Below the pieces are notes generated by a model. The model had not been told where the DNA came from. It worked only from the letters and a program-made list of their open reading frames with translations, and did not search any database. From NCBI RefSeq assembly GCF_964204645.1, contig NC_134031.1:4278001-4342000 (forward strand): a stretch of DNA of 64,000 nucleotides, given 5' to 3'. Origin of the DNA: Tubulanus polymorphus (lineage: Eukaryota > Animalia > Nemertea). Positions 51 to 47,266 of this stretch are shown here, piece after piece. The first letter of the stretch is position 1; every line of letters begins with the position of its first letter. A program made the position numbers and the translations under genes.

Positions 51-3000
51 CGTAACATTGGATGGCTCGTAATCAGCAGGAATGTTTTGCAGGAAGAACC
101 GGAACGCTTGCCAGATCTTGTTACAGAAATTACGATTATATACGGCGTGATCGACGTTGAAATTTATGTTCTGATCTGCAACAAGCGAAAACCTCTATGA
201 GAACGCTGGCAAATACCGAGACTGATTAACGAAGTAACCGAGGGGCAAAATGAAACGTACTTTTGAAGTTGTAAGAACACAAAGTGAATCGCAGTGCATC
301 CGCACCACATTGCTTGATCCCGTGTGGAAACTGTCTCTTCTGGCCGGCCATCGCTTTATCGATCTCAGACGGCGGCAAATTACTTTTCTCTAGTTCAGCA
401 TTCAGTACCTGATGGGAGGAAATATCGATTCAATTTTAAATGAAAGTTCACTCAGATCTCAGGTAACGCTGGTGGCGAATGAACTGTGCCTAGTCCCAGC
501 GCGTATTCTATGTATTTTTACCTTCAAACGAACTCCTTGTATCACATGTATCGGATTTATAACGTTCCCGAGAGATTTACTCATTTTACGCCCATAAACA
601 TCTCTCAGTAATCCGTGTAATAGCACCTGAAAATATTTATTAATCACATGTTCGCATCACAGAAGTTCCAAGAAACAGTCAGCCCATGGACTATCTGCCA
701 GCATCAATTATTGAATTTCAGCAAAATGCAAAATTTGGTTGATTTTCAATTGTAATTATTGATTCTCATCCGCAATAGACTGTAAAACGCACCTTTTTAA
801 ATGGCAACGAACCGTGCAGTTCTTGACACAACATGACCATACGCGCGACCCAGAAAAACAAAATGTCACTACCAGTTTCCAGTATATTAGTCGGATAATA
901 CTGCTGTAGATCATCGGTCTATTGAAAGTTAAACGGTAATCCAGTTAAAGAACAGTTTAAGATACTTCGAAAATGCAGAAAACTATGAAATATACAAACC
1001 GAATCCGGCCAGCCAAGCATCGACAGAGGAAAAATAGCTGATGAAAACCACGTATCTAAAACATCTTCATCTGAAATCAGTATTACACGTGTCAAATGCG
1101 CTTAACTTTTCGCTAATTAGACAATTATCAGATATATTTACCTTGAATAAGTTGAAGTTGATCTGATGCTAAACCGGTCAAGTTTGCAGCTTTCAGCGTT
1201 GCCTCTTCTAATGATTTACCACTAACCCATAGATCAACCCCATTTTCCTGTAACAAAATATCCGATTAAAAGACTAATTCATTGTTAAATTAGCAGAAAT
1301 AGGTGAGAATTCTTAGTTACCTTGATCCGTTTACCAGTCGCGTCCATAACTCTATAAGCCGGTATCTGGTGTCCCCACCACAACTGGCGACTGATACACC
1401 AGTCCTGTTTGGCTTTCAACCACTCGTTCCAGATGTTCTCGTGGTGGTCGGGAATGAGCTGCAACTCGCACGAGTTCACAACGTCCCGAGCTCGGTCCAT
1501 CGACATCGAACAATCGACAAACCACTGCTCCCGCAACACCGGTTCGATGATATCTCCGGATCGACTGAAACATTAAAATTCTCACTTATAAATTATCTCG
1601 AGGTTTGCTCGTTAATCTACCAGGCACTAAATGATAGTTTATAAATTGCAAGCAACAAGCCTAACCAAATAGCAACTGAATAACAAAGATAAAGATCATC
1701 AGAGTTCTATAGCCAATTTAACAACTAAAGATCGATCTTAAGATTCATGAGCACTTTTGGACTGAAGTCTTCGCGCCCAGCTGTACAAATCCTTAAGTTG
1801 TCAGATTGGCTACGGACCCGAGGGCCTAGTTTACTAACCTACAGATTGGTAACGTCATGCTATGATCTTCTGCACCGACGTACAAACCGAGTTCTTTCAG
1901 AGCGTTTTGTATTTTCGCTCGAGCGTCGAAACGTTTAACTCCCTATCAAAACACGACAACAAAACATCGACAGTTGAGTCACTTTTCTTAAAACCAAATC
2001 AGGGTGGCCACTTTTATTTTACATTTTCCCGACATGCGAGTTATTTTCCCTGACTTGATCTGCTCAGAAACCAATCAACTAACACAGTAAAATACCTAAG
2101 ACATAGACAGAAACTTATTAATTTAACGCACGATCTAGCAATCTCAACAAATTTTCCTGACTTTTCCCTGATTTTCAGCATTATTTTTGTTTACAAAATC
2201 CCACAAACTTTTTTAAAGAAAAGAAATTTCCCTGACTTTCCCTGAATTCCAGGTGAAGTGGCCATCTTGAAAATGTGAGCCTGAGAATGAGAATGTCAAG
2301 AGTTAATACCTGGAATTGTGGGCAGACGTCATTGATCAACCCTGCGTCGTCCAGTATCGACACAACTGGTAAACCGTGACGTCTGGCGACTTCGTAATCG
2401 ACGTGACTGTGACCGGGAGTCAATTTCACGACTCCCGTTCCGAACAATCGGTCGACGAAATCGTCGAAAACGATCGGCAGTTTACGATCACAGAACGGGT
2501 GCTGCAACTCTCGACCACGCAGGTGACTGTAACGATTATCATCGGGATGCACGGCGACCGCCGTATCGCCCAGCATCGTCTCCAAACGCGTCGTCGCCAC
2601 GACGACCAGTTCATCTGCAATAAACACAATTTATAAAATAATTTCCAGTCAATGTTTCGTGGATAAACCGGGCATAGCTTGTAGCGGAAAGGTTAAGGCA
2701 AGTTAGGACTTTTCAGCATTTACGGTGTGGGTTTCCGGAATAAATATATTGAATTGTGCCCATGATAGACGTTGTAACAGCTTATTATGATTTTATCAAA
2801 CCATAACAATCACCTATATACAAAGGACTTAAGTCATCCATGCACTAGAACGTATTAATTGCCCAGAAGTGATGTGTGCTTGGCATTTGATCATTTCATC
2901 AACACTTTTACCACCACAATTACAAATGCTGTGAGAAAGATTTAAATTTTCAGATGGCTCGTGTAAAGCAAAAAGTAGCACTTTTCCGCTCTTATTGACA

Positions 3001-6000
3001 CTTTTATGGAAAGTAAAAGCACAAAGGAGAACCCTAAAATTTTTTTTTCTTCAAAAAGTAGCACTAAATAGCACTTAGTAGACTTGCTGCAAACTGTCGA
3101 GTTTTAGTGTTTTGAAAGCAATAACCAAGTTTTAAAATTGAACCAGACCTGAATCGATGACTTTGTACGCGAATGATGTGAGAGTGCCGAATTCTATTTT
3201 GTTGGTGTATCCGGGCACTTCGAGTTTCGTCCTGTTGTTTACGACTAGATCATCAACCTTGAAAACAATGAATCCTAACATATTAAAACCTTTAAATCAT
3301 TATAAAATGAGAAAGCATCAGACCCGACCTTGGTATTTATCAACCTTTTAAGTCATTTTCACCACAATGTGACATCTAAAACAGTAGTTTAATTGAAAAT
3401 GAACTAGAATTTATTCAGTTTTAATGATTTTGTTCATATTTGAGATCTTAAAGAGTAGTCACTACTCTCAAATAGTAGTGGTAGTCAGGTCTGTGGTGTT
3501 CTAGCGTGGTAGTAATACTAAAACCTAAGACGGCATTTACAGAATTTTCATAATTGCACAATTGAATGAATTTACCATTGGACTAGGTTCAGTGTATAAA
3601 ATCATGCCAATGAAGCTTCACAGTTCTCTATTTACACTGCATCTCATTTAATGACTAATATCAAAAATTCATGAATTTTTGCTAATATTCAGCTCTATGG
3701 ATCTTAACCCAAGATTATAGGCCTATTGTGCGTACATACCTCGATATCAGAAATAGCTGACTTCAGAGAACACGACCAGTTGACTAGTCGATTGCTACGA
3801 TAAATCAATCCTCGTTCGTGCAAACGAACAAACGCTTCGACAACTGCCGACGAATGTTTCTAAAAAGCAAGACATTCGAATAACTATCTAATTCGTGCTA
3901 GAATAGAATATGTATCGAGGTTCATATCACTAATAAACAAGTATTTACCGGATCCATAGTGAAACAATCGCGATCCCAGTCCAACGACGAACCGAGTTTT
4001 CTCATCTGAGCATAAATATGATCGCCTTTCCTGAATAAGGTCGAAGAAATAAGACAATTAAGATCGACCCAAAACTATGTACATGTAAACAGGGTTGCCA
4101 ATGCTATCAGAAGTTGAGTTTTTTTCTTGTAACATTCCTTAGAAATGTGAAAGAAATTGTTCAAATTAATCAGTGATCAATTAGAAGACCTTGGACAGTA
4201 ACGTCTCCTCCACATCAAATTTCTTCAAGAAATACTGATTAAATACTGATGTAGGAACTCTAGTCTTGAGTCAAAATTATAGTAACAAAGCACTCGTAGT
4301 CAGGAAAAGTTGGCACTTCTGAGCATTGGGACCACCAGTATAAACCAGACCAGTGTTTTTGAGAATCCGCAAAGTAGGTTTACCACATAAAATCCCTCAA
4401 AATTCACTGACTCTTACGGTTTACTAACACGAGTCTTTTGTCACATGTATCAACTAAAATCAAAGCATTGAATAGGAATCATAAATGCTTAATGGGCGAC
4501 TAAAATAAGAAACGCGCGTTTGACGTACTGATTTTTCCACTGCCACACCTGATCGATAAACTGTCGTCTGCCGATATCGTGCCGTGTTAAACCGGTCTGT
4601 TTCATCAATTGTTTCTCGACGACGACTTGCGTGGCGATGCCGGCGTGATCGCACCCGGGATTCCACAGTACACGATCACCGCACATTCGACGCCTGAATG
4701 AGAAAGAAAAAGCCACAAAAACATTAACGAATAAACAGGAGAGATGGCACCATGAGTTCATTCCACAGGATTTTTATGGGTTTCATTTTCCATAACTTTA
4801 CCATACCCACATTAGGGATCATTCATTTATTACGTACGCAGGAAATTTGATTTTTTAAACCCCCCCCCTCTGTACGCAAAATTGGCCATTTTTTCATATA
4901 GGCCTAACATTAAGCATTACAGTACGCAATTGCACTGACCCCTACCCTAATGCTTACGAAATAAATGAATGATCCCTTATAAATTTTCCATACCCTAAGT
5001 TCACATCGCCAACCTAGAACAGGCAATGTAAGCTTATAAGCTTATTCTAAGTTAATAAGTGCCAATTATCAATTCCATCGATACAAGTGTTTTCATAGGT
5101 TTGTTATAGAATGTGTAGTAAGACATTCAGGCAAATAGCGTAAAATTCAAAATAGAAAGACAATTTTATTTTGAGAGCATTTTCTGATTTTCCATGCCTT
5201 TTCAATAGCCAAAGAAAAAAATTCCCATTTTTCAAGACCCGTAAGAACCCCGATTCCACCACTTCTAAAAATATATCTCACCATCTGACTATCGCGTCTT
5301 GAATAGAACTCGTGAGTGCGTGGCCGAGGTGAAGGTCACCGGTAACGTTAGGCGGAGGAAGACAGACGGTAAATCGAGCTGGACCGGGATTCACTTCCGG
5401 TTTAAAGAATCCTTTTTGTTCCCACCAATCGTACCAAGCGGCTTCGACGTACTGTGGACTGTAACGTTTGTGCAACGGACTGGAAATGTCTGAAATTTAA
5501 AAATAGAGTTGATGTCAACCACTTCAGCCTAATTCAGATCAGTTAAATCTAAATTTCAATCTTATCAGGATATTATCTCAGGTCCTCCTACAAGCTTATA
5601 TAAAATATGATGACCGGTAAAATGATAAAATCTCAGAGTTAGGCCTTATTTTGAGTTAATAAGTGAACCCATAATTGAGGATGAGGTCGAGTTCAAACAT
5701 CAGAATGTTAGAAAAATAAATCTATTTAATCATCAGTTGTGGATTAAATATTAGATTTTGATAAGACTCATCAAAATATGAATGATGTCTAATCTGGATT
5801 TCGCATAAAATGATTAATTTCAATGGTCCCAAATCACCCGCATTAAGCGGATTCAAGCCTTATTTATCATTGCGGTTCTATCAGTTGTTGTTATCGAGGA
5901 GCGCCTTACCTTTTTTATCGCCTGGAATTCTTTCTGCTGCGCTGTACTGTGCATCGTATACGGCTTCAGTTGAAGTGGCAGCCTGAAGGGCGAAAGGAAA

Positions 6001-6567
6001 AATGTAAAATGATTAAAATCTTAAAAAATTATATTTCTTTATCGCAGAAAATCTTTACTGCCTGCATCTCATTAGAATGCTACATCTCAGTAGGATGACT
6101 GCTTCATCGCATGCAATGATTGAGAAGTAAAGTAGCCAGTAGGCGAGTAGGTCTACCTTTTCTTTCATTTTTTGTTCATGCGCCAAACGCTTCGCCTTCT
6201 TCCTTTCCAGTTTTTCCTTCTGTTTCTTCCTGTTGTATTCAACGCGATCCAGTCGATCATCAGCGGCCCCCGACGACAGGGAGTTCGGCGTCGTGGTTTC
6301 ATCGTCAGCCGCTGCACTCCCCTGGGTCTGGGCTTGCCGCTGTTGTTGTTGGCCTCCTCCTCCTCGTTGTTGAACATTGTCTACGTTTGAAGATAAAAAA
6401 CGCTGAGAAAACGAATAGAACGGACTGGATAGATGCGTTTTATTGGCAACGCCTAGTTTATTCACGCTGTATACTAGATGCGAGGACCGCTGAAGCCGGG
6501 AATATTGCGTTAAACGACAAAAACTCGGAGCTTTTAATTTGCAAATCGATCTCATGTGCGCCGCCAT
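51..6567 (-). CDS. VARS2: Valyl-tRNA synthetase, mitochondrial type (5' part; continues beyond the left edge)
   Basis: GT-AG exons read by hand: 6157-6567, 5910-5982, 5282-5489, 4529-4693, 3949-4030, 3740-3859, 3149-3257, 2310-2614, 1839-1942, 1321-1564, 1142-1247, 1000-1070, 793-918, 522-626, 261-408, 51-175. Motifs: [15 protein letters not shown] (HIGH), [52 protein letters not shown] and an Arg/Ser-rich, acid-free N-terminus favour VARS2 over VARS1. Confidence 0.93.
2000..2269. mobile_element. CAGGGTGGCCAC-TIR MITE (degenerate)
   Basis: TIR plus internal TTTCCCTGA subrepeats; same family as copies at 34581, 41953 and 45032. Confidence 0.7.
4815..4976. mobile_element. PIF/Harbinger-like MITE
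   Basis: TIR GGGATCATTCATTTATT with TTA TSD; related copies at 24846-24968 and 36441-36602. Confidence 0.8.
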
Positions 6568-6968: not shown

Positions 6969-9455
6969 ATGGCGTCCACGAAAAAGAAACAGTTTCGGAA
7001 ACGAAGACAAGAGTCTTCTAGCAGCGAAGATGAGGAAGAAATGGGCGATCGACCTATGTAAATATGATCTTTTTCATTGTGCCTTTGATTTGGTTAAATT
7101 TTCACGTCGCTGAATCGTTTGGAATTTCACGGTTTTACCGTTTTGAACAGTTTTTTTTAGAAGAAACCTACTTCCGACGAGAGGTGGCAGCACCGGATGG
7201 TGACATATTTCAGTCATCTGTCAAAATTTGATACCCGTCCATGTCTTGATATTCTATTTACAGCCCGAAAGATTCGATTACAAATGATATAAAAGCGTTG
7301 CAGAAATTGAGAAAACGACCAAATGGCGTGAATGTTATTGGTTTGGCATTAGGCAAAAAATTACCAGATAATGAACCAAGGCTGGTGGTAGGCGTTAAAT
7401 CTGTTGTTTTATGTAACATAATAAAAAGAAAATACTGAATTCTGAAATGTGAAAATCTATGTGATTTTAGAACGATCCATTTAAGATGGACACTGGTGGA
7501 ATAGTAGATATGAAAGCGTTGAAAGAACAGTAAGCCTGATTCGTTTATTTGAGAAATTTAAGAAATCTGGTCAAACCTTGCTTACCATGAGCAGAATCCC
7601 TGCAGTGTTTGTGTACAAAATGTAATTATTCTTTAAAATGATTTACCTGATAATTCGTTGTGATTTCAGGGGTAAACTAGCAGATCCTGAGAGTATCGGA
7701 ACCTCCTTCGCGGCAGAGACTAACAGAAGAGATGAGGATGCTGATATGTAAGTCCGAAGTAAAACAAATCGTAAAATGGTTCGGTTTCTTAATTAATATT
7801 TGTCGTATTGACGAAGCAACTCTCTATGTATTCAATTATAGGTTGAAATATGTCGAGAAAGAATTAGCAAAGAAGAAGGGTTTAGTCTCGAAAGATGAGT
7901 CTCCAGAAAAGAAAAGGTTCGCATTTGTTGACAATATTCTTTAACATCTCTTTCATGATAGTATGATGAGAGTTTTATTTAAGAAGATGAATTAACATAA
8001 CATCGATTATAAGTTTAAAACCCACCAAAGTTTGAAAGATTGAAAGCAAATTTTATTTGTCAAAAATTAAAATCCAAAGACACGACAATTTGGGTTTGAA
8101 TTCTTGATAATTGATATTAGCTTTGAATCTTTTAAACTTTGTATATTATAACTTATTAACTATTCTCCACGTCAGAAGTCAAGTGGCTAAACGGCTACAG
8201 GGCCCAATGAAACGCCTTTATTACCACTGCTATCATATATACCTGGTATTTTTTTTCTTCAGCGTAAAAACTGTGAACGACGTATTGTTCGATGTTCCCG
8301 AACATTTACGAGCGACGACCATGAAACGCACCGAGGATATGTTGTCGAATCAAATGTTATCCGGAATACCAGAAGTTGATCTCGGAATTGAGTAAGTCAT
8401 TGAAAAAATAGTAGTCATGATTTATTGTCATAATTCCATGTAAGATATGCTCTTCGGCTTATACATAATGAGAAGCATGAATTGAAAAATGGTAAAACAA
8501 ACAGACATTATAAATAAGAATATTCAAGAATGAGCTATGGTAAAAGCGAGTGTTTTAATTTGAGATTTAAAAGCATCTAAGGATGGAATAAAATGTAATT
8601 GGTAAGGTATCGTATCTCATTCCAAAATGACACAATAGTAACGGCGACGAACTGCTAGTGATAGAACCTGCTGCAAGGTTAAGCCAAATTTTGTAGCGAT
8701 CTGTTTATTTTCGTCACAAGATGAAGAAATGTGTCTATTTTATAGCGCTAAAATACGTAACATCGAACAGACCGAAGACGCCAAACAGAAATTGATTGAA
8801 CTGAAAATGAAGAGAAACAATGAGAAAGTGTCCGCGTTTGTGCCGACTAATATGGCCGTGAACTTCGTACAACACAACAGATGTAAGTAAATCCATCGCA
8901 ACTGAATCGTCTCTTACCGGGAAACTTGGAAGACAAATCTTAGAACAATCGCAATAGAATATCAATCAAATTTCCATCGGATAATAGATTATCACTGATG
9001 TCAAATGAACGTCACTGGTCCCTATTTTGCTGTATTCGCTACAACCTTTTTTGTGCATTTAAAAATCTAATTTTAACCTCAGCTCATTCATTATTGTTTA
9101 AGAGCTTATGAAGTGATTCTATTTTGAATCTGCATGATAAATCAGTTTTCTATGGTAGCCGCTCAATGAGCTAAAATTTGTATTATTTCAGTCAATATCG
9201 ATGATAATAATCCCATATTGAAGAAAGAAGAGCCACCAAAACCGAAAATGCCACGCGTTGGAGATGCGGAATCAATATTTGGTAGGTTACGTAATATTGT
9301 GAGCAATTTGAATAGCTTTTTTGTCAAGTCGGCACCTGTGTCCTCAAGTTTTCGATTCGATTCCAGATCAAGAAGGCAGCAAGAAAAAAGACGGCGAAAA
9401 AGCGACGGATGATTATCATTACGAGCGTTTCAAGAAACAAATGAGAAGATATTGA
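6969..9455 (+). CDS. C9orf78: Splicing factor C9orf78 / telomere length and silencing protein 1 homolog
   Basis: Exons 6969-7057, 7264-7387, 7471-7529, 7670-7747, 7842-7916, 8263-8391, 8746-8882, 9192-9281, 9367-9455 join in frame. Motifs: LQKLRKRPNGV, DPFKMDTGG, FAAETNRRDEDADM, EDMLSNQMLSGIPEVDLGI, FVPTNMAVNFVQHNRF, EKATDDYHYERFKK. Confidence 0.95.
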
Positions 9456-10256
9456 ATCTGATCCGAATTCGACGTATTTAATCGTGCATTATCGCGTCAA
9501 TCGAGTGTAAAGGCTTGATTGTTTGTTTGTCGGAGTAGGGCAGATACCGTTGCTTTGGCATTACCGCCTTGGTCAGGGCTAAAGCTCGGCTCGTTTGTAC
9601 TCGGAAAAGCTGAACTTCGATATATTCGTATCGATACATTATTGTGTTCATGAAAGCAAGGCAGCGTGTCAGACAGTGAAGGTTGTAAATATTGTAAATA
9701 AATTTCGGAAATAATAGATCTGCTAGATGTACTTATTTTGCGATTTTTGATTCTAAATGGCCGGTAGCCGCAGGACTGAATTTACCCCATTTCTGGAAGT
9801 TGTTGGTGTGGTCGTGGTACTACAAGCCACGCGTTATATAGTACTCATTTCAAGTCCACGTTTCAATTAGTCTTTGAAGCGATCCAGTCCATATCGTGTA
9901 ACCTCATTACTCGCATATCCAGCATCTGGAGCCATTTCCACAGTCTCAGGTTGAGACTTAATTTATACAGACATCATAATGAGTTTTCTTTACAAAGACT
10001 TCCCTGATTCGAGAGTATATTCCGGAAGAATATAGAAGAGATGACCACACCTCCGAATGATTGAAGCAGAAAAAGTTCTTTTTTACATTTTCAAAATTTT
10101 TTTTTATTCTAAAAGGCTAAATGAGTACATAATTTATTAGATACAAACGTAGTGTATTAGATATACAGGAGTTGTGACCACTGAATGAGCGTTTATGTAA
10201 ATGAGATACAACCGACTTAACGAATTCAATACAGCCAGCGGTCGATATCATCCTAG

Positions 10257-11293: not shown

Positions 11294-12600
11294 TTTTCAA
11301 ACTTAACAATTTTTTTATAGATTTAGTAAACTTTTCAAGATGTTAACGATTTATTTCTATAGATCTTTATAGAATTTCTAATGGTGTCAACCTTTCCAAA
11401 CGAATCCATTATGCCGTTTCAGACGGACAGGATTCGAAATTTAAACTTTGAATCGATATATTTTTCTATAGTATTTTCAAACTTAACAATTCAATTATAA
11501 TTTAATATGGATATAAACTTAATAATGTTTTAACGAGTTATTCGGCGGAATTTCTCCCACCAAACAACGATTCATAAACTATGAATTAATATCTTTTTCT
11601 ATAGTATTTTCAAACTTAACAATTCAATTATAATTTAATATAGATATTAACTTTTAAATGTTTTAACGAGTTATTCGGCGGAATTTCTCCCACCAAACAA
11701 CGATTTATTAACTATGAATTAATATTTTTTTCTATAGTATTTTCAAACTTAACAACTACAGTCAAATCCCGCTTAATCGGGATCGGCTTAATCCAGATTT
11801 TATGATATAATTTAATTTGAATATAAACTCTCGAAGTAATTAACAATGTTTTGAAAGATATTCGTCGGAATTTCTCCCGCCGAATAACCTTTCAAAAATA
11901 AACTCTATACTATGTTTATAATTTCTTGATAATAAAATTGTTCAAACTTAACAAATATATCTCTATTTTAAAGATCTATATATTTCAACAACTTAGAAAT
12001 GGTATTTGATAGGGCTAATCAAAAGATGATTCGAAACTATCAAGTTCCATTTACGGAGCTTAAACTCTAAGCTATATTTTTTTCATAGAATATTCAAACT
12101 TAACAATTTTCAACTATATCTTTATATTCAATCTTTAGAATTTATGAACATTTAACGAGCTTTGAAACGGTATTCGAAATTGTCAAAATGACTCGTCATA
12201 ATAACAATTTTCGAATATCATTTCAAAAATAGACTTTATATATGTTTAGATTTTTATATATTATTTCTTTTAAAATTTTAAAACTTAACAATTGTTTTAT
12301 CATAATCTCTATTTGATTATACTCTAAAAATCTCAACAACTATAGTATATCTTAAGAATGGACGCCGGAAAAAGCGATCTACACACCTCTTTTCAATCGG
12401 ATATCATCTTAAAACTACTGAATTATAATCTTTAAATATATGTATTTTTTTTTCTTCTAAAATTCCAAAACTTAACAACATTTTCAGAGAAAATTTAGTA
12501 ATAACTTCAATCAACAACGTTTGAAAACAACAATCGAATCGCCGGGTGTTTGTTTCATCGAAAGAAACATCCAGCAGACATATTCAACAGTCTTTCGAAC
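11294..12600 (-). repeat. Array of 8 units, each a conserved (TT)CAAACTTAACAA motif plus a variable hairpin
   Basis: Motif at ~11298, 11478, 11611, 11744, 11943, 12095, 12280, 12467 (spacing 133-199 bp), with one hairpin per unit. Units 2 and 3 are near-identical 133-bp duplicates. Confidence 0.85.
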
Positions 12601-12720
12601 TTTAACTATATTATCGTTTTATGGTATTTTGATATTTTTCTCTAAGTTATTCATATACGATTTAGAAAAACATATCAACGTTTCAAGTATCTTTTACTTC
12701 TTAAATATATACATATTATC

Positions 12721-13570
12721 AGGACGGATATAAGATCGGACGGAAGGTCTTCTTTGGACGGATTAACTGGACGGGTTGGTTACCTACACTGCAATAGGTA
12801 TCTATTCATTCTACCTTCGAAGAATCCATATCAACCAATAAGAAAGAACATTTGAAATTTGCAAGTAACACCCTTCTTTCTATAGCTGAATGAATCCTTA
12901 AAATAATTGAAATGAATAAACATTTATTCTATGTACGTGGACGGAATAAGATAAATAGGACGGAAATCTAGCACCAATCGATACAACTAACTATATACAT
13001 AATATCTACAGATATTCTTATCACAGAATAGCGCGTTGGACGGATTACGATAAGTCGGGTTTTTCCGGAAGAATCCTGGCCGGACGCTTTCGGAAGATTC
13101 CGGGCAGTGTCGTAGCTTTGAGTGGGCGGAACGCGTAAGGGCTCGTTATGTCCGGATCACGAGAGAGAGGCTCTCGAGTTCCGAACTCGGAAGTTATTCA
13201 TTTCCGTGGGCAGTGATTAAGCTTCTTTCGCGGACGGATCTATTGAAGGGTAATTTGGATGGCAGTTTTTTTCTAAAAAATTTTTTTTGAAATACCCAAA
13301 TTTGTCTAAAAGATTCCAATCATCTTGAAATTTGGGAATTTGAATATTGGACGACCATGCAAAATTAGAACGAGATTATTCAACTGGGTATTTCAATGGC
13401 AGTTTTTGAGTTAAAAGTATAATTTTTCATGAAATAACCCTCAATGGCAGTGATTGGGCTATAGATATATAAGATAAGTCGACTGAGCACTTATCGGCGA
13501 CCTTGGTAGGTGAACCCACCGGAAACACCTAATCGTAACTCAGCGAGATAAGGACGGGCAAGTAAGGGCA
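12721..13570 (-). promoter_or_regulatory. Cluster of miR-184- and miR-34-complementary sites (on a minus-strand RNA)
   Basis: 7x GGACGGA plus 2x GGACGG and 5x GGCAGT(G), all in the same orientation; several also match the miRNA 3' halves. Confidence 0.6.
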
Positions 13571-16418
13571 AAGCCTTCAATACACCACGAGTAATCGAAA
13601 AGTGAATTGCTCGGCTAGAAGTTTTTTTGAAGTAATATTTTTTTTCAGTTTTTTAAAGTTGATTTTGCCCAGTATTGTATTCATATACAAATGTTACGAT
13701 TTGGTAATTGCCCTCTAAATCTGCCTAAATTAATTAGAGATTAACGGTAATAGTTTTTCTACAAAAGACTGGATTCGCCTAAACGGGAAGCATATAAAAT
13801 CTCACCACGATTTTGTTTCGTTTAAAAAACCACCTTTTACCGTATATAACTAATGAAATAATCAATCATTTCAAACTAAACCTGAGCATTGGAGTAAATA
13901 TTGAATACATAGACAAATTAATTACTAATACGTATTTACAATTGCATAAGTACAGCTGCGCAGCTTTCTACAGGCAAAATAACCAACGTTATGGTATTTC
14001 AGATCTGCGAAAGATATGATGTTTTGTTAGGTCTACTAAATGCGCACCGTTGATATAACATTGATATGAATGATATATTGGCGCGCCGAGGTTACACACG
14101 ACATAAAAAAAAAACTAGCAATTGTACTTCGCTTACGCGCAGGCATGAGCCCCCGGAGGTTGAGTTTGTTTTTCAATGTGGATAAAATCATTTATCTTTT
14201 GAAAACCTCTGACCGGGCCCAGTCACATTGCAAACTAATTAAAAACTATCTATCTAACAGTATTTACATATTTTCAGGCCAAGTAAAATAGGATTTTTGC
14301 GAATGATTTACACTCTAATAGAAAGCGTGATAGAATTATTATTTATCGTGATTATAGATTATTCGATATTAATATATGTTTTTCACCACCATTATCCAGG
14401 GCAAGTTTCATTAGCACCTCTGCGATAATAAATTAATATAACGCCTTTATACAAAAGCCATAATGTGTATAGCGAAATTAGAGGTGGTTTCTGAAATTGT
14501 ACCCGAAATTTAATACGTGAATGTTTGCATGACAATAACATATTGTCGTAGACGGGGAAGGGAATTTAGCCGATGGTTTCCTGAGGAAATTTGTCCCGCT
14601 TTTACACACGGTTGAAGGATTCTAGTTACCATGGGCCGAATCGACCTATTGATGCGCTATATTTGATGATGAAGTGTCCACGAATCGTCGCGTGTCAGCG
14701 CACTTTATACCGCGAGAGCTTCAATACAATGGCTGTTTACATGACAAAGATGTATATGAGTTTATACCGTACCGATACTTGAGAAGGTGTAACTATGGGA
14801 ATTGCGAATCGGGGTCGACATAATGACTTGACTCAGCTCGTCGTCTGCCGTCGTCGCCGGGCGCACTTCCTGGTTTTTATTCGGAGGAATATCATTCTCT
14901 CGCCAAATATCCGTGCTTGGTGGAGACGATTTTTTCGATAGTCGTTATTTCGGTTTTTCAGATCAATTCAAAAGAAGGCGACGAGTTTCGTTATGAAAAA
15001 TCTGTAAAGATAACACGTAGAATCGTTATATTTATGTTAAAAGAATGTGACGGAATTCTTCGTTTTCATCCGAAAAAAATATTTACGTAGATTATTTCAA
15101 AATGTTAATTAACAACAATTAATCGACCATTCCCTACGATTGATAATCAATCATGGACTCGTAATTCGAATATTCGTGGGAAATATCTAAGAACAAACAA
15201 TGACAGTCAATAGAAAAACGGGTTTCTTTTAGAAACGAATCATGATTTTGATTTTTGAGCTCAACGTCGTAAATAACGGAACGTATATTGTGATCTCGTC
15301 CGTTCTAGACAAAACCGATCCTTAATGGAACGAAATATTTCTGTTATTGTAAGGTAAACTCCCTATAAAGCATTTCCCATTCATGAAATTACGCCGGCCT
15401 ACAACATAAATCAAACATAATGTTGAATGAACCATGGTAACCGGTGCCCGACTCGCTGCCCAAACTTGAATCACACGTCGCATTCCAAACACTTGAAATT
15501 GTTGAACATGAATAGTACACTATGCCTCAGCAAAAACTCGGACAATTTCTAAGAATATTCAAAATGAAGTGTTTTTACTAGAGCTCTGGGGACAAACGAC
15601 GACATCGACCCTAATCGTGGGGCTCTCAATTTTCCTTTAGTTTTAATTGCACGCTTTATTCAAACTATTTGGAATAAAGTCTATGTTATTTCTTACAAGA
15701 GATGCATTCCGCGATATAAAGGTGCTCAAGCAGAATTAAATTCATCACTATCCTTCGAACATTTCTTTCTAGTTTATCAAGTGATACTATTATCTCTAAT
15801 GAAATTAAAATCATCGGAAACATTTTTGACTATACAACATTCTTTATACTGATTCATACTTTTATGAAAAGTGCACTTTTGATAGAAGTTCAAACGTACC
15901 TTCGGTTTGAATAAAAAATGGTAATAGTTCTTTTTTCGGGAGATGCGAAATCGAACGTCCGTCGGAGCGCATCAGTTGATATTGATTTTGAAAGAGCTTC
16001 GTTAGTAAATCTCAGTACCTGAAACGAAATATATCAAAATCAATTAAGTTGTTGTTCTTTAATCAAGTTCTAAGCTTCTTAGAACCCAGCGTTGAAAATA
16101 AAATGGACAGGATTGACAAATATTCCATCTAAATTGAATTACCGTGCAAAATTAATTTAATCGAAAGTTTATGTTACTTTAACATATAAGAACTGACATT
16201 TACATTTTCGTAAAGGGAATAATTTCCCGTTTGTTATCAGTAAAACAGTTGATATGTACATACCTGGCAAAAACTGAGGTGTTGGTTAGGATCCGGGTTG
16301 AAAACGGCTCCTGTCCCCCGGCAGGTTGATGGACCTGTCACGGGAGACAGGCGAGCCGGCCGTCTGCGCTCGCGACTGGAACGAGTCGTTGTGACACTTA
16401 GACACAGTAGGTCATCAC

Positions 16419-16572
16419 TATTTATATGGGACAGCAACCAAACAGGTTCTGAGCACGCATATTCGAAGTGAGGACTTGTTGCCAAGGGCTTTTGTTGGGT
16501 TAGCGAGAATCCGCAGGGCGCATTGAAAAGGCACGCGTGCTCGGGCGGGAGAGTCTTTAGAATGGTGATTGG
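16419..16572 (-). promoter_or_regulatory. Pol II core promoter (TATAAATA, GC box, CCAAT)
   Basis: Minus-strand TATAAATA at 16426-16419, GGGCGGG at 16543-16549, CCAAT at 16572-16568; splice donor ~160 nt downstream of the TATA. Confidence 0.65.
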
Positions 16573-17785
16573 TAATCGCGTAGATTCGTGCTCCTCGGTA
16601 AATTAAACAGTAAATTAACAACTGCTTTAATTACATTCACCCGTTATGCACATCACGAATGTTTACAATACTCAGCGTTAATTACGCCTTTACGAAAAAA
16701 CTTGCTTCAATCATCCAGCGTTTGCCTGAACAGAGCCCAGAATAGAAAATTAAGATTTGCGGAATCGTTAAGATACGTACGTATAGGATTTTGCCAAAAA
16801 ATCTTAAATCTGTGTTTTCTTAAATTCTCCATTTTCTGCGAGGAAAACCTCACGGAAAAATCGGTGAAAAAAGTTACTAATATACATATGTGAATTATCT
16901 CGGTGAGAAACGAACTCGCAGCAAATTTTGAAAACACATCTTATGTCCCCAGAACGTTTTAATGGTTCAGCTAAAATATATCGCGCCTGTATGAAAATAA
17001 CGAACGCAGTTTATACGAAGATGAAAATATACGCGCACACTAGCGGCTGTTCACGGACATGTATGGAGGGGTCAAAATTGTGCAATTTTTGAGTGGACGC
17101 CTACATTTATAATCGTCAAACGTAACTAGATTTCTCTGCAACGAATGACATCAGTTCATCTATTGTTATAGTATCTACTGAAGACGGGTTAAGGACACTG
17201 TTTGACGGCTGAAGGTTCTCTGTAGTTTTGGAAAAATCCGCTGCCGTTGAACCTATTCGTATTTGGTTCTAACTAGTAGCTGAATTTCGTCGTAAAGAGG
17301 TTCTACTGTACAGATATATACACATGAACCTGACGGCAAAAGTTCGGTTCTAAAGGTAATGATCTTCAGTGACCAGGTTTCGTTGTTCTCATATCAACCT
17401 CATTCCGCGTACTTATTTTCCGCGTCGCCGTTTCGTTGGATGCAAGACCAACAACACATGATTCACATTTTGAAAACTTTTTTATTTCACTCTTACAAAA
17501 TATAGACATTCGAATAAACAATAAACCCAGAAGATATAAAAAACCATATCCCTTAAGCGAGAGATAATGTATATCATTCAATAAATAACTGTATAAATAA
17601 CTGTATAGAAAACCACAACCCGAAGATGACAATTCAAGCAAAATACTAACAAAATACTGAGGTTCACGCATTCTCAATAGTATAAGCAAATAAACAAACT
17701 TCACATTCTCTTTTTTGTTACAAACTTTTAGTACTTGGATTTCTTTAAGCAAGTTTTCTTTTATATATATTCATAACAAGATTCA

Positions 17786-19589
17786 TCATTTGGATTTCTT
17801 GAGTAAAATGTGAAAAAGCGCTGCCAAACCCGCAGCCAAAATGGCCAACAAGGATGAAACGATAAAAACTAATTGCGTGCAATCATTTCCGTAACAATCA
17901 AAATTAGGTAACAATGGTGAGGTAGTTACATTGGAATAAGAGGTCATATTCGCGTAACTAGTTACCACATGTGAATCATAGACTTTACCGTAAATCAACA
18001 CGGTAACGTACAAAACAATAAATTCGACCATTTTCCCAACCCCGAAATGTAACCCCAAATGATCGTTACCGTAGACCTCGGCAAGAATAACGGGAACGAG
18101 GGTATAAGTAATACTGATAGCCGAGCCTAGTAAAATATTACTTATGATTACAGCAGCTAACGAACGCACGAAAAAAACCAGTACGATAAAGCCTAGTGCA
18201 CACATTGTGTAAGCGAACATAACGAATACATCTCTCGCTACACGTTTGAACAGGTAATCGGAAAGTGGACCGATCAAAACACGCATTACGAGTCCCGATA
18301 GGGTGTTAATCAGCACGATAACAGACACGTATTGGACGAGATGCACGGATTTCAACGTAGGTCCGATGTTGGTTACAAACATGGCCATCAGTCCGCCGAT
18401 TATGGAGAACCCCCACACAAGTGCGTGATAACTCGGATATCCTAATACGCTCAGAAAACCGCAAGCCGTCGATTTATTCGTATACGCCTGTTCAGCGGGA
18501 TGGTGCATCGGGCGTACGCGGACTTCCTCGCCGTCGTCGCTGCTATCGGAAGGAGAAACATCGGGAGAACCGGGAATTACACCCGCAGAACCCGGAATAA
18601 CATCGCGTGAACCGGTTTTATCGACTGGCGAACCGATACCGCCCTCATTATCCGTTAATCTTATGTGTTCATCGTTCGTTTCGTCGGGCGGTAACTCGTG
18701 AAAAAATAGCAACGACAAAATTCCCGTCACAGCCCCGAGTATCCACATCAATAAGATATAACCTTGCAGATCTTGTTTCGCTTCGTGTTTCAGGTGTCCA
18801 CGAACGTAGGCGCCGTTGTAGACGGCGGTGAAAACGAACAAACTCAACTGAAACATCGTGTCCATCACAGCAACGACTTTGGCGTTGTGACGGTTCGGAA
18901 AATTCCGGATGTTCGTTAACAACGCGGTTGTGTAGAGGTACGAAAAACCGTGGGCTGAAAAAAAAAGCGAAGATATCTTTGAAAGTATGCAGCATATGAA
19001 CACGGATGTCTTTATAAACGAATAGATGGTTTTTTCTATTTACGCAAACTTGTCAACAATAGGGAAATTCTGTTACCCGGTAATCAAATTTTCACGGAGT
19101 CAAAGACAGGAGCCAACCAGGATGATTTTAACATTGAAGCTTTTATCGAAACTTACTGATTTAGTTCATCCAATAGGTATTGTATTGAAATTATATATTC
19201 TATTAACTGCTTTAGGTTTACTTTAAACGTATCAGCATATACAGATCAAAATCCAGAGTAAACTGAACATTCATCGTAGATGTAAAATTCATTCATTCAC
19301 CGCATCGCACACATTGTGCAGCACATAATCAGTGAAATAAACAACACAAATCGATTATTACGATAGGGCCTACTTCACTTACCTAAAATACAGAAATAAA
19401 ATGCCATCAAGCCGTAGTGCTGCGAATAAAATACTTTCGCGGAGAATGTTGAATAGACAAGTCCGTATCCTAAGGTAACCAGTATGAGACCGATAGCAGA
19501 GGTAATCGTTGGCCCAGTTTTATCGAATATAAAACCAGAAAAAATTTGTGCACCCAATCCAAACATCTGAGCAGTAGATATCATTTCAA
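17786..19589 (-). CDS. Major facilitator superfamily transporter, MCH1/nodulin-like; first exon not located
   Basis: Exons 19383-19589 and 17786-18954. About 11 hydrophobic helices, MFS motif A variants GFIFDKTGP and GPLSDYLFKR, family-typical C-terminal CYGNDC. Confidence 0.8.
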
Positions 19590-30000: not shown

Positions 30001-32369
30001 ATTGCAGGCAGCCATTGATCATTTGAGTTTGTCAGTTCAGCGTCTGAAAGCACGGATACAAGGCGTTGATATAGCAGTCGAACCGTCTGAGGTAAATTTT
30101 GACGCGCAATCTTCGTTGATTTCTGTTATCTTTCCTCAAACTGTCCGATAATCGTATGTTTACAGAAACAAAAGCCGGTATTTGATTTGTTGTCAGTCTC
30201 TGATGATTCACTAACCGCGGAGGAGAAACTCGCCAAGAAGAGACAGCGAATATTAAAGTGCGCTTACGAAGGCAAAATGAGAGCCAAACAGAAACAAGAA
30301 GAGGAGAAACTAAAGGTAAATTTGGTATAGCAAGCACAGCAGTAGTTCATTAAAACTTTCAGTGCTGACTAATTAATACCCTATAGTGCTGGAGATAATT
30401 TGAAAAAAAAAAGATTCCACCCCAATGTGTTTAATATGGGTCATACCACTATAGTGCGTCTACACTACGATGCGGTGTATCCATAGTAACTAATATTCAA
30501 CTATGGTTGACAAGTGCTACTATCTTTCAATTAAGATGAAAACTAATTACTGATTACATTAATACACCGTGTGTGGTGTACCAGCAAAGTCAATCACGGA
30601 TGTATACACCGCACTGCGGTAAAGATGCATTGAAGGGGTTAAACACTTTTCGAAAGTATTTCATATTTCGTTCTCGTGTTCATCGTTGCAGGCCGAGAAA
30701 GAACGAACGCATTTGATGAAGAAAAAAGAAACAAATTTCAAAGGTTGGCTCAAAGAAGTCCGACAAAGACGAGGGAAATTACTGGAAACGAGAAATCGAC
30801 GAAAACAAAAACGATCGGACATGTCGAAACGACGGACGTACGCGTCTCAACAACGAATGAAAATCATTTCACAACTCGCTCGGGGTAACTGCGAACGTTT
30901 AATCATATTGAAATGTTTGTCACGGACCTGCTCGGTCGGCATGGCATTTATGGTCATTGTATTGTCACAGCACTTATGTGTTTTCTATCCATGAAAAACC
31001 AGTCATTAAGAATTCACAACCATGGTTTTATAATGCTAAATCGCTAGACATGAATATCTCCTTAGGAAATAATAAAGTTCACTTCAAATTAGTGAATAAT
31101 TGAGAAATATTCGACTGATATAATGACTAATAGTGGCTCTTTTACTTTAAGCGAGTAAAAATGAAGATGATTTCGGGAAGAATGATGATGACTGGCAGGT
31201 GTATAGAGATATTGTAAGTGTTGCTGCCCCATCCTTCCCCTGAGCATTGGAAATATAGTGGCCAATATAAGCCAAAAACAAATATAACAGTAGACCCTCG
31301 TTTAAGTCTGATCCGACCAGCTTCCTGGATAAACTTACACTTATCTGGTGCTTTATACAAGGTTTGCGATGTATATGAACCAATCATCAACAAATTTCCA
31401 CAACTGTATCTAAATTTTGTTTCTTTTCACTGAGTAACTCAAGTAGGATCCCGTAACTAATTGATTATTATTGTAGAATTTGCGAGACGATGACAGCGAC
31501 TCAGATATGGAACAAGATAAACTGGAAGAACTCGAAAAACTACTGGAAGAGAATGATCCCGAATTCCAAAAGTAAGTTAGTTCATCAATCGTGAGAAACA
31601 CTGAAAACATACGCTTTATCAGAACTTCAATACCTTAAATGTTTATGACTTTTACAGAGAGATGAAGGCGAACAGCTCGGGGCAGTACGATATAGCCGAA
31701 TATTATAGGTTACATCTGGCAGTAGAACAAATAAGGTATTCATAATTCATTCTTCCACCCCTCGGCGTATATATCGGTACATAAGTCTTACCGTCTCAAT
31801 GTTTTAGAGCTCCGGAACTTCTGTTTCAACCATCGCTGCTCGGTTTTGAACAGGCCGGTTTAACGGATACGATATCACACGTACTGAAAAAATACGGCAG
31901 CGACGACGTTCAGAAATTGGTTGATGTGAGTTCGTCTTCATCTGATATTTCAACTTCATCCAAATCGTACGCAGAAATCTTATGACTTCCATAATTTCGT
32001 TTTCAGTTCGTCTATGTCACTGGATCTTGCGCAAGTTTCCCAGATCTGAAAGACCGCCTCGAAGTTGAACTATTGGCAAGTCGTCCTTATCAATCAAGTT
32101 TTAGCATTTATACCGCAGGTAGATATTAACGTGAATATTGATTTCTAAAGCTTGAGGCTTTTCTTTTCATAAAGTTGAAAATCTGCGTGTATATTTCAGA
32201 TAATCCGGTGCTAGATGCCTGGTTAGGAGCCAGGAAGCTTGCCTGTTCACCGATATTCAAAGATTGCGTAATCACCAGAGCAGACTATCAAGAGAAAGGC
32301 GGTGAATACTTGAAGGAACATTCGCGCTCGAATCAATTCTTCCCATCGATACCCGTCAACAATACTTAA
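27063..32369 (+). CDS. ACTR5: Actin-related protein 5 (INO80 complex)
   Basis: About 18 GT-AG exons from ATG 27063 to TAA 32369. Motifs: [98 protein letters not shown]. Confidence 0.95.

Positions 32370-40909: not shown

Positions 40910-47266
<6,357 letters not shown>

Follow-up and report, generated by a model that had tools for sequence, protein, structure and literature searches.

The window analysed here, a stretch of 64,000 nucleotides from the palaeonemertean Tubulanus polymorphus, corresponds to C7:4,278,001-4,342,000 of a 268-Mb, 77-contig assembly. A ValRS gene, recognized by its exon translations, occupies positions 1285-6567 on the minus strand, with its first exon starting at 6567; judging from the translation of that exon, we read it as the mitochondrial form. 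Head to head with it lies a Hep_59-family gene (C9orf78-like) on the plus strand (7732-9412). The minus strand also carries a 405-aa ORF for an MFS transporter (17786-19003), which shows 100% identity with a T. polymorphus protein at NCBI (LOC141908719), and the last exon of this gene ends with its stop at 17786. About 300 nt past the stop, an AAUAAA signal followed by a GU-rich element (17440-17486, minus strand), both read from the sequence, probably serves the MFS gene as its proximal poly(A) site. Between this gene and the convergent Hep_59 gene we found no further gene, and none of the seven ORFs tested (64-128 aa, within 10-17.7 kb; five minus-strand, two plus-strand) has a Pfam match, in a test that coding exons shorter than 50 aa could escape.

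This gene-free interval contains the block that is the subject of our analysis (12721-13575, minus strand), which combines five seed matches to miR-34 with nine seed matches to miR-184. Two Pumilio-type motifs (UGUAUAUA, minus strand, at 12999 and 12713) are also assigned to it.

Seed matches to miR-34 and miR-184

A preliminary description of this DNA had placed the miR-34 seed motif GGCAGTG at positions 13103, 13209 and 13446 of the plus strand and the related TGGCAGT at 13260 and 13397. A motif search returns all five, together with a third TGGCAGT start at 13445 that falls within the 8mer site, and the sole further copy of GGCAGTG in the 64 kb is located at 4538 on the reverse strand. Because the plus strand reads in the microRNA sense, the complementary sites (CACUGCC or ACUGCCA) would be found on RNA made from the minus strand. 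The miR-184 seed motif GGACGG is present on the plus strand at 12722, 12738, 12756, 12769, 12939, 12958, 13038, 13232 and 13552. The earlier claim that the miR-34 motifs are oriented like the GGACGG(A) motifs (12722-13552) holds without exception (14/14 in the same direction). The two families had also been described as interleaved, which is accurate for 13103-13260 but not for the rest of the block: a minus-strand transcript would present first a single miR-184 site and then three miR-34 sites, followed by another miR-184 site, a pair of miR-34 sites and finally seven miR-184 sites, the closest motif copies being 13-19 nt apart.

All five miR-34 sites are canonical seed sites, in which pairing to nt 2-7 is accompanied by a match to nt 8 or by an A opposite nt 1; one is an 8mer, two are 7mer-m8 and two are 7mer-A1. 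Site 1 (13102-13123, minus strand; motif at 13103) is of the 7mer-m8 type; its pairing covers nt 2-9 and, in register, nt 13-17 (TAGCT), with one base fewer in the loop between them. Its predicted duplex has an energy of -23.6 kcal/mol and its 3' score is 4.5 (P=0.006, random flank), while its accessibility is low, at the 23rd percentile. Site 2 (13208-13229, minus strand; motif at 13209) is also a 7mer-m8, with additional pairing to nt 14-17 (AGCT), a duplex energy of -17.6 kcal/mol, a 3' score of 3.5 (P=0.044) and an accessibility at the 68th percentile. Its distance from the miR-184 site at 13232 is 23 nt, and site 3 (13260-13281, minus strand), a 7mer-A1 in U/A-rich surroundings (-12.3 kcal/mol, 87th percentile of accessibility), is separated from that miR-184 site by 28 nt. 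The last two sites, 48 nt apart, are a 7mer-A1 at 13397-13418 (minus strand; -15.4 kcal/mol, 83rd percentile) and the 8mer at 13445-13466 (minus strand; -18.8 kcal/mol, 78th percentile). Duplex prediction gave no central pairing for any of the five sites. Considering both families, 12 of the 14 sites, including four of the five for miR-34, are above the regional median of predicted accessibility in the minus-strand RNA.

When the five miR-34 sites are aligned with their flanks, only the six-mer GGCAGT is invariant, which is the pattern expected of seed sites and not of a duplicated unit. It is important to note that pairs of sites have 4-5 flanking bases in common beyond the seed (TCAATGGCAGT, ATGGCAGTTTTT, GGCAGTGATT), so that the five sites may represent about three independent events, or small duplications. 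On the plus strand of the window outside the block, two of the five GGCAGT copies are 7-mers or better, compared with five of five inside it; from base composition, we estimate a probability of approximately 0.02 that all five would reach this quality by chance.

Two of the sites had been noted to extend into the 3' half of miR-34. Both extensions are present (CG and then TAGCT at 13103; ATTA and then AGCT at 13209), but the argument built on them gains only modest support, since a significant 3' score is accompanied by unremarkable energies. The in-register score of the five sites, obtained with a register-aware, TargetScan-like procedure, totals 15.0 (p=0.0055 against random flanks), whereas in unconstrained duplex energy with miR-34, shuffled or random flanks do just as well (p=0.55). 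The best individual score is that of the site at 13103 (4.5), and the other miR-34 sites score at most 3.5. Scored against the 3' half of miR-184, the same flanks reach 10.0, compared with 15.0 for miR-34. The miR-184 sites yielded p=0.015 in the register-aware test.

We considered whether the block could be a TDMD trigger for miR-34 and rejected this, as the pairing of the 3' half goes no further than nt 17, which falls short of extensive pairing of the 3' end. Among the miR-184 sites, the one at 13551-13575 combines a 6-mer seed with a 7-nt match (TAAGGGC) to nt 16-22 across a shortened central loop; by its predicted pairing, this site, with its motif at 13552, has a TDMD-like geometry that the other sites do not have.

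Elsewhere in the window, two GGCAGTACG...ATAGCC stretches on the plus strand, at 31681 and 57074, show unusually good pairing with miR-34 (duplexes of -22.8 and -17.7 kcal/mol, respectively). They are isolated and are probably due to chance.

Cognate microRNA genes and enrichment over background

The genome encodes both microRNAs. The Rfam mir-34 model identifies a single locus, C6:3489859-3489934(-), with 48.7 bits, just under the cut-off of 53.4; its predicted fold is a clean hairpin (-41.9 kcal/mol, z -4.25). The 22-nt mature sequence of its 5' arm is identical to the miR-34 sequence used in the preliminary description. The motifs in the block are therefore seed matches to the worm's own miR-34, as encoded by this hairpin. 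The mir-184 family has grown to nine hairpins (C7:15050823-15052837 and C12:1911047-1912058), of which two canonical copies are on C12 and seven clustered paralogues are on C7. The mature arms of the C7 paralogues vary at nt 9-13 and keep the seed and the ATAAGG tail. Genes for mir-29 and mir-7, with canonical 5' ends, are present as well.

The preliminary description had proposed a scan of the block with the seeds of conserved families. We scanned 12700-13600 with 57 such families, of which four (miR-34, miR-184, miR-29 and miR-7) had their 5' ends compared with the genome's own genes, and compared the counts with 1000 dinucleotide shuffles. Only miR-184 and miR-34 are enriched, and both only in the sense orientation. 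For miR-34 there are 5 copies of GGCAGT against 0.05 expected, a number that 0/1000 shuffles produced, and for miR-184 there are 9 six-mers against 0.34 expected. Two additional families had been listed as weaker evidence in the same block. The miR-29 8-mer (TAGCACCA, at 12969) exists but is not enriched (p=0.06), and the two GGAAGA motifs of miR-7, at 13067 and 13092, exist but are bare 6-mers at chance level (p=0.09). Consequently, we do not consider miR-29 and miR-7 as further partners of the block, although both genes are in the genome. We also discarded an apparent enrichment of miR-183/263 (ATGGCA, three copies), which is a by-product of the overlap with ATGGCAGT at the miR-34 sites and includes no 7-mer match.

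An analysis of 6-mer frequencies points to the same two motifs. The most over-represented 6-mers in 12700-13500 are GGACGG, with 8 copies inside and 4 elsewhere in the window, and GGCAGT, with 5 inside and 5 elsewhere, and these are the only rare non-coding 6-mers in the whole window with at least 5 copies in 360 nt. With a GGCAGT frequency of 1.6e-4 per strand-base in a sample of the genome, the Poisson probability of at least 5 copies in 360 nt is about 5e-9. This value has to be read against a background that is heavy-tailed. We combined a 200-kb sample with the window to obtain 264 kb (528 kb of strand-sequence) and found 35 strand-specific isolated clusters of rare 6-mers, defined by at least 5 copies and a flank identity below 0.4, or one per 15-20 kb, which far exceeds the Poisson prediction. 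Pairs and triples of GGCAGTG are likewise frequent genome-wide, almost all of them in satellites (for triples, in a search with a three-site pattern). Clustering alone is thus weak evidence, and the strength of the case comes from the coincidence of two seeds.

The motif cluster itself is real and non-random. The earlier argument that a second conserved family makes coincidence less likely agrees with our rough estimate: the chance that the miR-184 cluster is accompanied by another, equally oriented seed cluster is about 1e-3. This value is the product 0.066 x 0.014 and covers a second isolated cluster within approximately 500 nt that corresponds to one of the 57 seeds in the same orientation; as a rough estimate, it would fall further once the quality of the sites is counted.

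The block is single-copy according to a genome search. Within the 268-Mb genome, the pattern of two miR-184 seeds followed by a miR-34 seed recurs only in one (GGAC)n-headed repeat family and in one GA-rich repeat, and is otherwise unique. An origin of the block in a repeat or transposon was rejected on the basis of its single copy, a flank identity of 0.37 and the fact that only a 6-mer is invariant. A decayed (GGAC)n microsatellite was also rejected as the source of the miR-184 motifs, as that repeat is an unrelated element elsewhere in the genome. The family in question is dispersed, at C1:8069711-8069959 and about ten other places, and consists of a (GGAC)n head and a conserved core of approximately 60 nt starting with AAAAGTGAACGCAATAGCC; it yields spurious runs of miR-184 seeds across the genome.

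These data bear directly on the possibility that the block has no function and arose by coincidence or through small local duplications in intergenic DNA outside any stable RNA, which we regard as plausible though unlikely. It is a reading that draws on the abundance of isolated clusters (35 with at least 5 copies per 528 kb of strand-sequence), on the 4-5 bases that pairs of sites share beyond the seed and on the unremarkable duplex energies, and the scanning of many windows means that rare coincidences get picked up. On the other hand, both 6-mers are the seeds of deeply conserved, genome-encoded microRNAs in the same orientation (approximately 4e-4 to 1e-3), all five miR-34 sites are 7- or 8-mers, in-register 3' pairing is detected for miR-34 (p=0.0055) and for miR-184 (0.015), accessibility is biased upward, the composite pattern has no second occurrence in 268 Mb apart from repeats, and other RNA-level motif arrays are present on the same strand. 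If the block proves to be untranscribed, it would serve as a calibration case for the chance frequency of seed clusters.

A further seed cluster was observed in another part of the window. Five copies of CCCTGA, the miR-125/lin-4 seed (nt 2-7) in sense orientation, are present at 41996-42270 on the plus strand (UCAGGG on minus-strand RNA), and three of the five are inside a degenerate repeat of about 20 nt. Read along the minus strand, this cluster follows the stop of a C2H2 zinc-finger ORF (43386-44666) by ~1.1-1.4 kb, and it may represent miR-125 sites in the 3' UTR of that zinc-finger gene.

A putative host transcript and its alternatives

Our preferred reading, which we hold with moderate confidence, is that the motifs function as miR-34 response elements in a transcript of the minus strand that is independent and apparently non-coding. 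A predicted TATA box (TATAAATA) is located at 16419-16426 (minus strand), from which we infer a transcription start about 30 nt downstream, near 16390-16396. Consensus splice donors would close a first exon at 16264 (CAG|GTATGT) and a second at 15900 (AAG|GTACGT), the predicted intron between them (16263-16019) ending in TTTCAG and the predicted exon 2 covering 16018-15900, all on the minus strand. After a UGUA-rich, AU-rich stretch, two AAUAAA signals (10103-10138, minus strand; at 10138 and 10108) are the probable 3' end of the transcript, which would converge tail to tail on the Hep_59 gene. All of these promoter, splice and poly(A) signals are matches to consensus sequences within DNA that is AT-rich, and together they would fit a separate Pol II transcript of approximately 6 kb, made from the minus strand, with the block in its body and presumably retained in an exon.

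The same strand also carries protein-type motifs, whose uneven distribution between the strands speaks for a minus-strand RNA. In the interval 9-17.8 kb, the Brat-type motif UUGUUAA is found 11 times on the minus strand and 0 times on the plus strand, and the Pumilio-type UGUAHAUA 8 times and 4 times, respectively. The minus-strand UUGUUAA copies are located at 11309-12478, 16621 and 15115, and nine of them are in a hairpin array adjoining the microRNA block.

The elements could also be real and belong to a protein-coding 3' UTR, either that of a long MFS isoform with a distal poly(A) site or that of an overlooked small-ORF gene that starts near 16 kb; we consider this plausible though unlikely. 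The MFS gene is on the same strand and directly upstream, its last exon ends at 17786 and no other gene separates it from the convergent Hep_59 gene, and an ATG in the predicted exon 2 has a frame that is open to the exon end. It is also general knowledge that multi-site 3' UTRs (lin-14, hbl-1, HMGA2, hid) and long neural 3' UTR extensions exist. However, a good AAUAAA and GU-rich element is available ~300 nt past the MFS stop, the block is 4.3-5 kb away from that stop, the TATA box and the consensus splice sites lie between the two, and 0/7 tested ORFs (64-128 aa, 10-17.7 kb) match Pfam. If the block were part of a distal MFS 3' UTR, it would represent ordinary multi-site repression of an mRNA, with an unusually dense target and no non-coding decoy.

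It appears very unlikely that the motifs are strand-specific sites for an RNA-binding protein, on the RNA of either strand, or for a DNA-binding factor, with an accidental identity to the seeds. That the copies have only a 6-8-nt core in common, and that other short protein-type motif arrays are nearby, would suit such a factor, but two accidental identities with conserved seeds would be required, the in-register matches to nt 13-17 of miR-34 and to the 3' half of miR-184 would be unexplained, and DNA-binding factors usually have sites in either orientation, in contrast to the 14/14 that point one way here.

Finally, the idea that precursor genes of mir-34 and mir-184, decayed or novel, reside on the plus strand, and that we would be detecting remnants of their mature arms, takes up the microRNA sense of the plus-strand motifs and the expansion of the mir-184 family to 9 hairpins, but it is effectively refuted by model searches and motif spacing: no mir-34 or mir-184 model match was obtained in 12400-13800 at E<=10 or in the window at the gathering score, the whole-genome searches with both models did not return the locus, and copies only 13-19 nt apart are too close for hairpins.

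Returning to the response elements on a separate minus-strand transcript, the five motifs would act as seed-type binding sites for the worm's own miR-34-5p and, together with the nine miR-184 sites, would form a composite microRNA-binding module of about 850 nt. The host would most likely be an independent, spliced, apparently non-coding Pol II transcript, with its TATA box at ~16.4 kb and its poly(A) signals at ~10.1 kb, which would also carry the Pumilio-type and Brat-type motif arrays of the same strand. Docking of miR-34-loaded Argonaute would rely on nt 2-8, and at two sites the pairing of nt 13-17 would strengthen the contact; with no central pairing, the RNA would be bound and not sliced. 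A spacing of 23-48 nt between sites favours cooperative action, and several neighbouring sites in the block are spaced in this way. The direction of regulation could then be of two kinds. Cells expressing miR-34 and miR-184 may clear the host RNA; alone or together with clearance, an abundant host RNA may act as a decoy, holding both microRNAs off their other targets.

A bolder and rather doubtful extension is that a single minus-strand lncRNA of ~6 kb is a modular hub decoy, in which the two-microRNA block, with its five miR-34 and nine miR-184 sites and the TDMD-like geometry of one of the latter, is combined with the Pumilio- and Brat-type arrays. If true, such a molecule would act at the same time on two ancient microRNAs, by buffering or destroying them, and on two translational repressors, by titrating them, as a lophotrochozoan composite of roles that in mammals are split among CDR1as, Cyrano and NORAD.

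Comparison with known microRNA-binding RNAs

The block is best read as a set of miR-34 response elements that would form, with the miR-184 sites, a docking module for two microRNAs, and RNAs of this kind, multi-site targets or decoys, are already known. Target 3' UTRs with multiple sites include C. elegans lin-14 (seven lin-4 sites), hbl-1 (let-7 and lin-4), Drosophila hid (bantam) and HMGA2 (let-7). The block resembles them in having many seed sites in a short stretch, two families per RNA and some 3' supplementary pairing, and its density, 14 sites in about 850 nt, is comparable to that of hbl-1; it differs in that the predicted host RNA has no assignable coding sequence.

Natural sponges are represented by CDR1as/ciRS-7, with roughly 70 sites for miR-7, and by linc-MD1, for miR-133 and miR-135. 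Repeated, non-sliceable seed sites on an apparently non-coding, predicted RNA would be a common trait, and the use of two families is as in linc-MD1. Compared with CDR1as, the five plus nine sites of the block are far fewer than roughly 70.

Triggers of TDMD include Cyrano (miR-7), NREP (miR-29b), HSUR1 (miR-27) and Drosophila Marge (miR-310 family). The combination of a seed, a central mismatch and 3' pairing is shared with site 1 (nt 2-9 and 13-17), and the miR-184 site at 13552 would pair with nt 2-7 and with nt 16-22. Unlike in these triggers, the 3' pairing of miR-34 ends at nt 17, short of the 3' end. With NORAD, a lncRNA that acts as a Pumilio decoy, the putative host RNA would share the Pumilio- and Brat-type arrays on the same strand. 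The difference is that NORAD is not known for clusters of microRNA sites, and here the protein-motif arrays are modules adjacent to such a cluster.

We know of no description of a joint cluster of miR-34 and miR-184 sites, and our literature searches returned nothing relevant on nemertean microRNA targets or on such a joint cluster. To our knowledge, there is also no earlier example from the Spiralia of an RNA densely occupied by sites for two microRNAs. Should transcription and binding occur, the block would be part of a rare invertebrate RNA that engages two deeply conserved microRNAs at high density. With its Pumilio- and Brat-type arrays, the putative host RNA could show how microRNAs and RNA-binding proteins exert control on one scaffold and, again provided that it is transcribed and bound, it would offer a handle on the joint roles of miR-34 and miR-184 outside insects and vertebrates.
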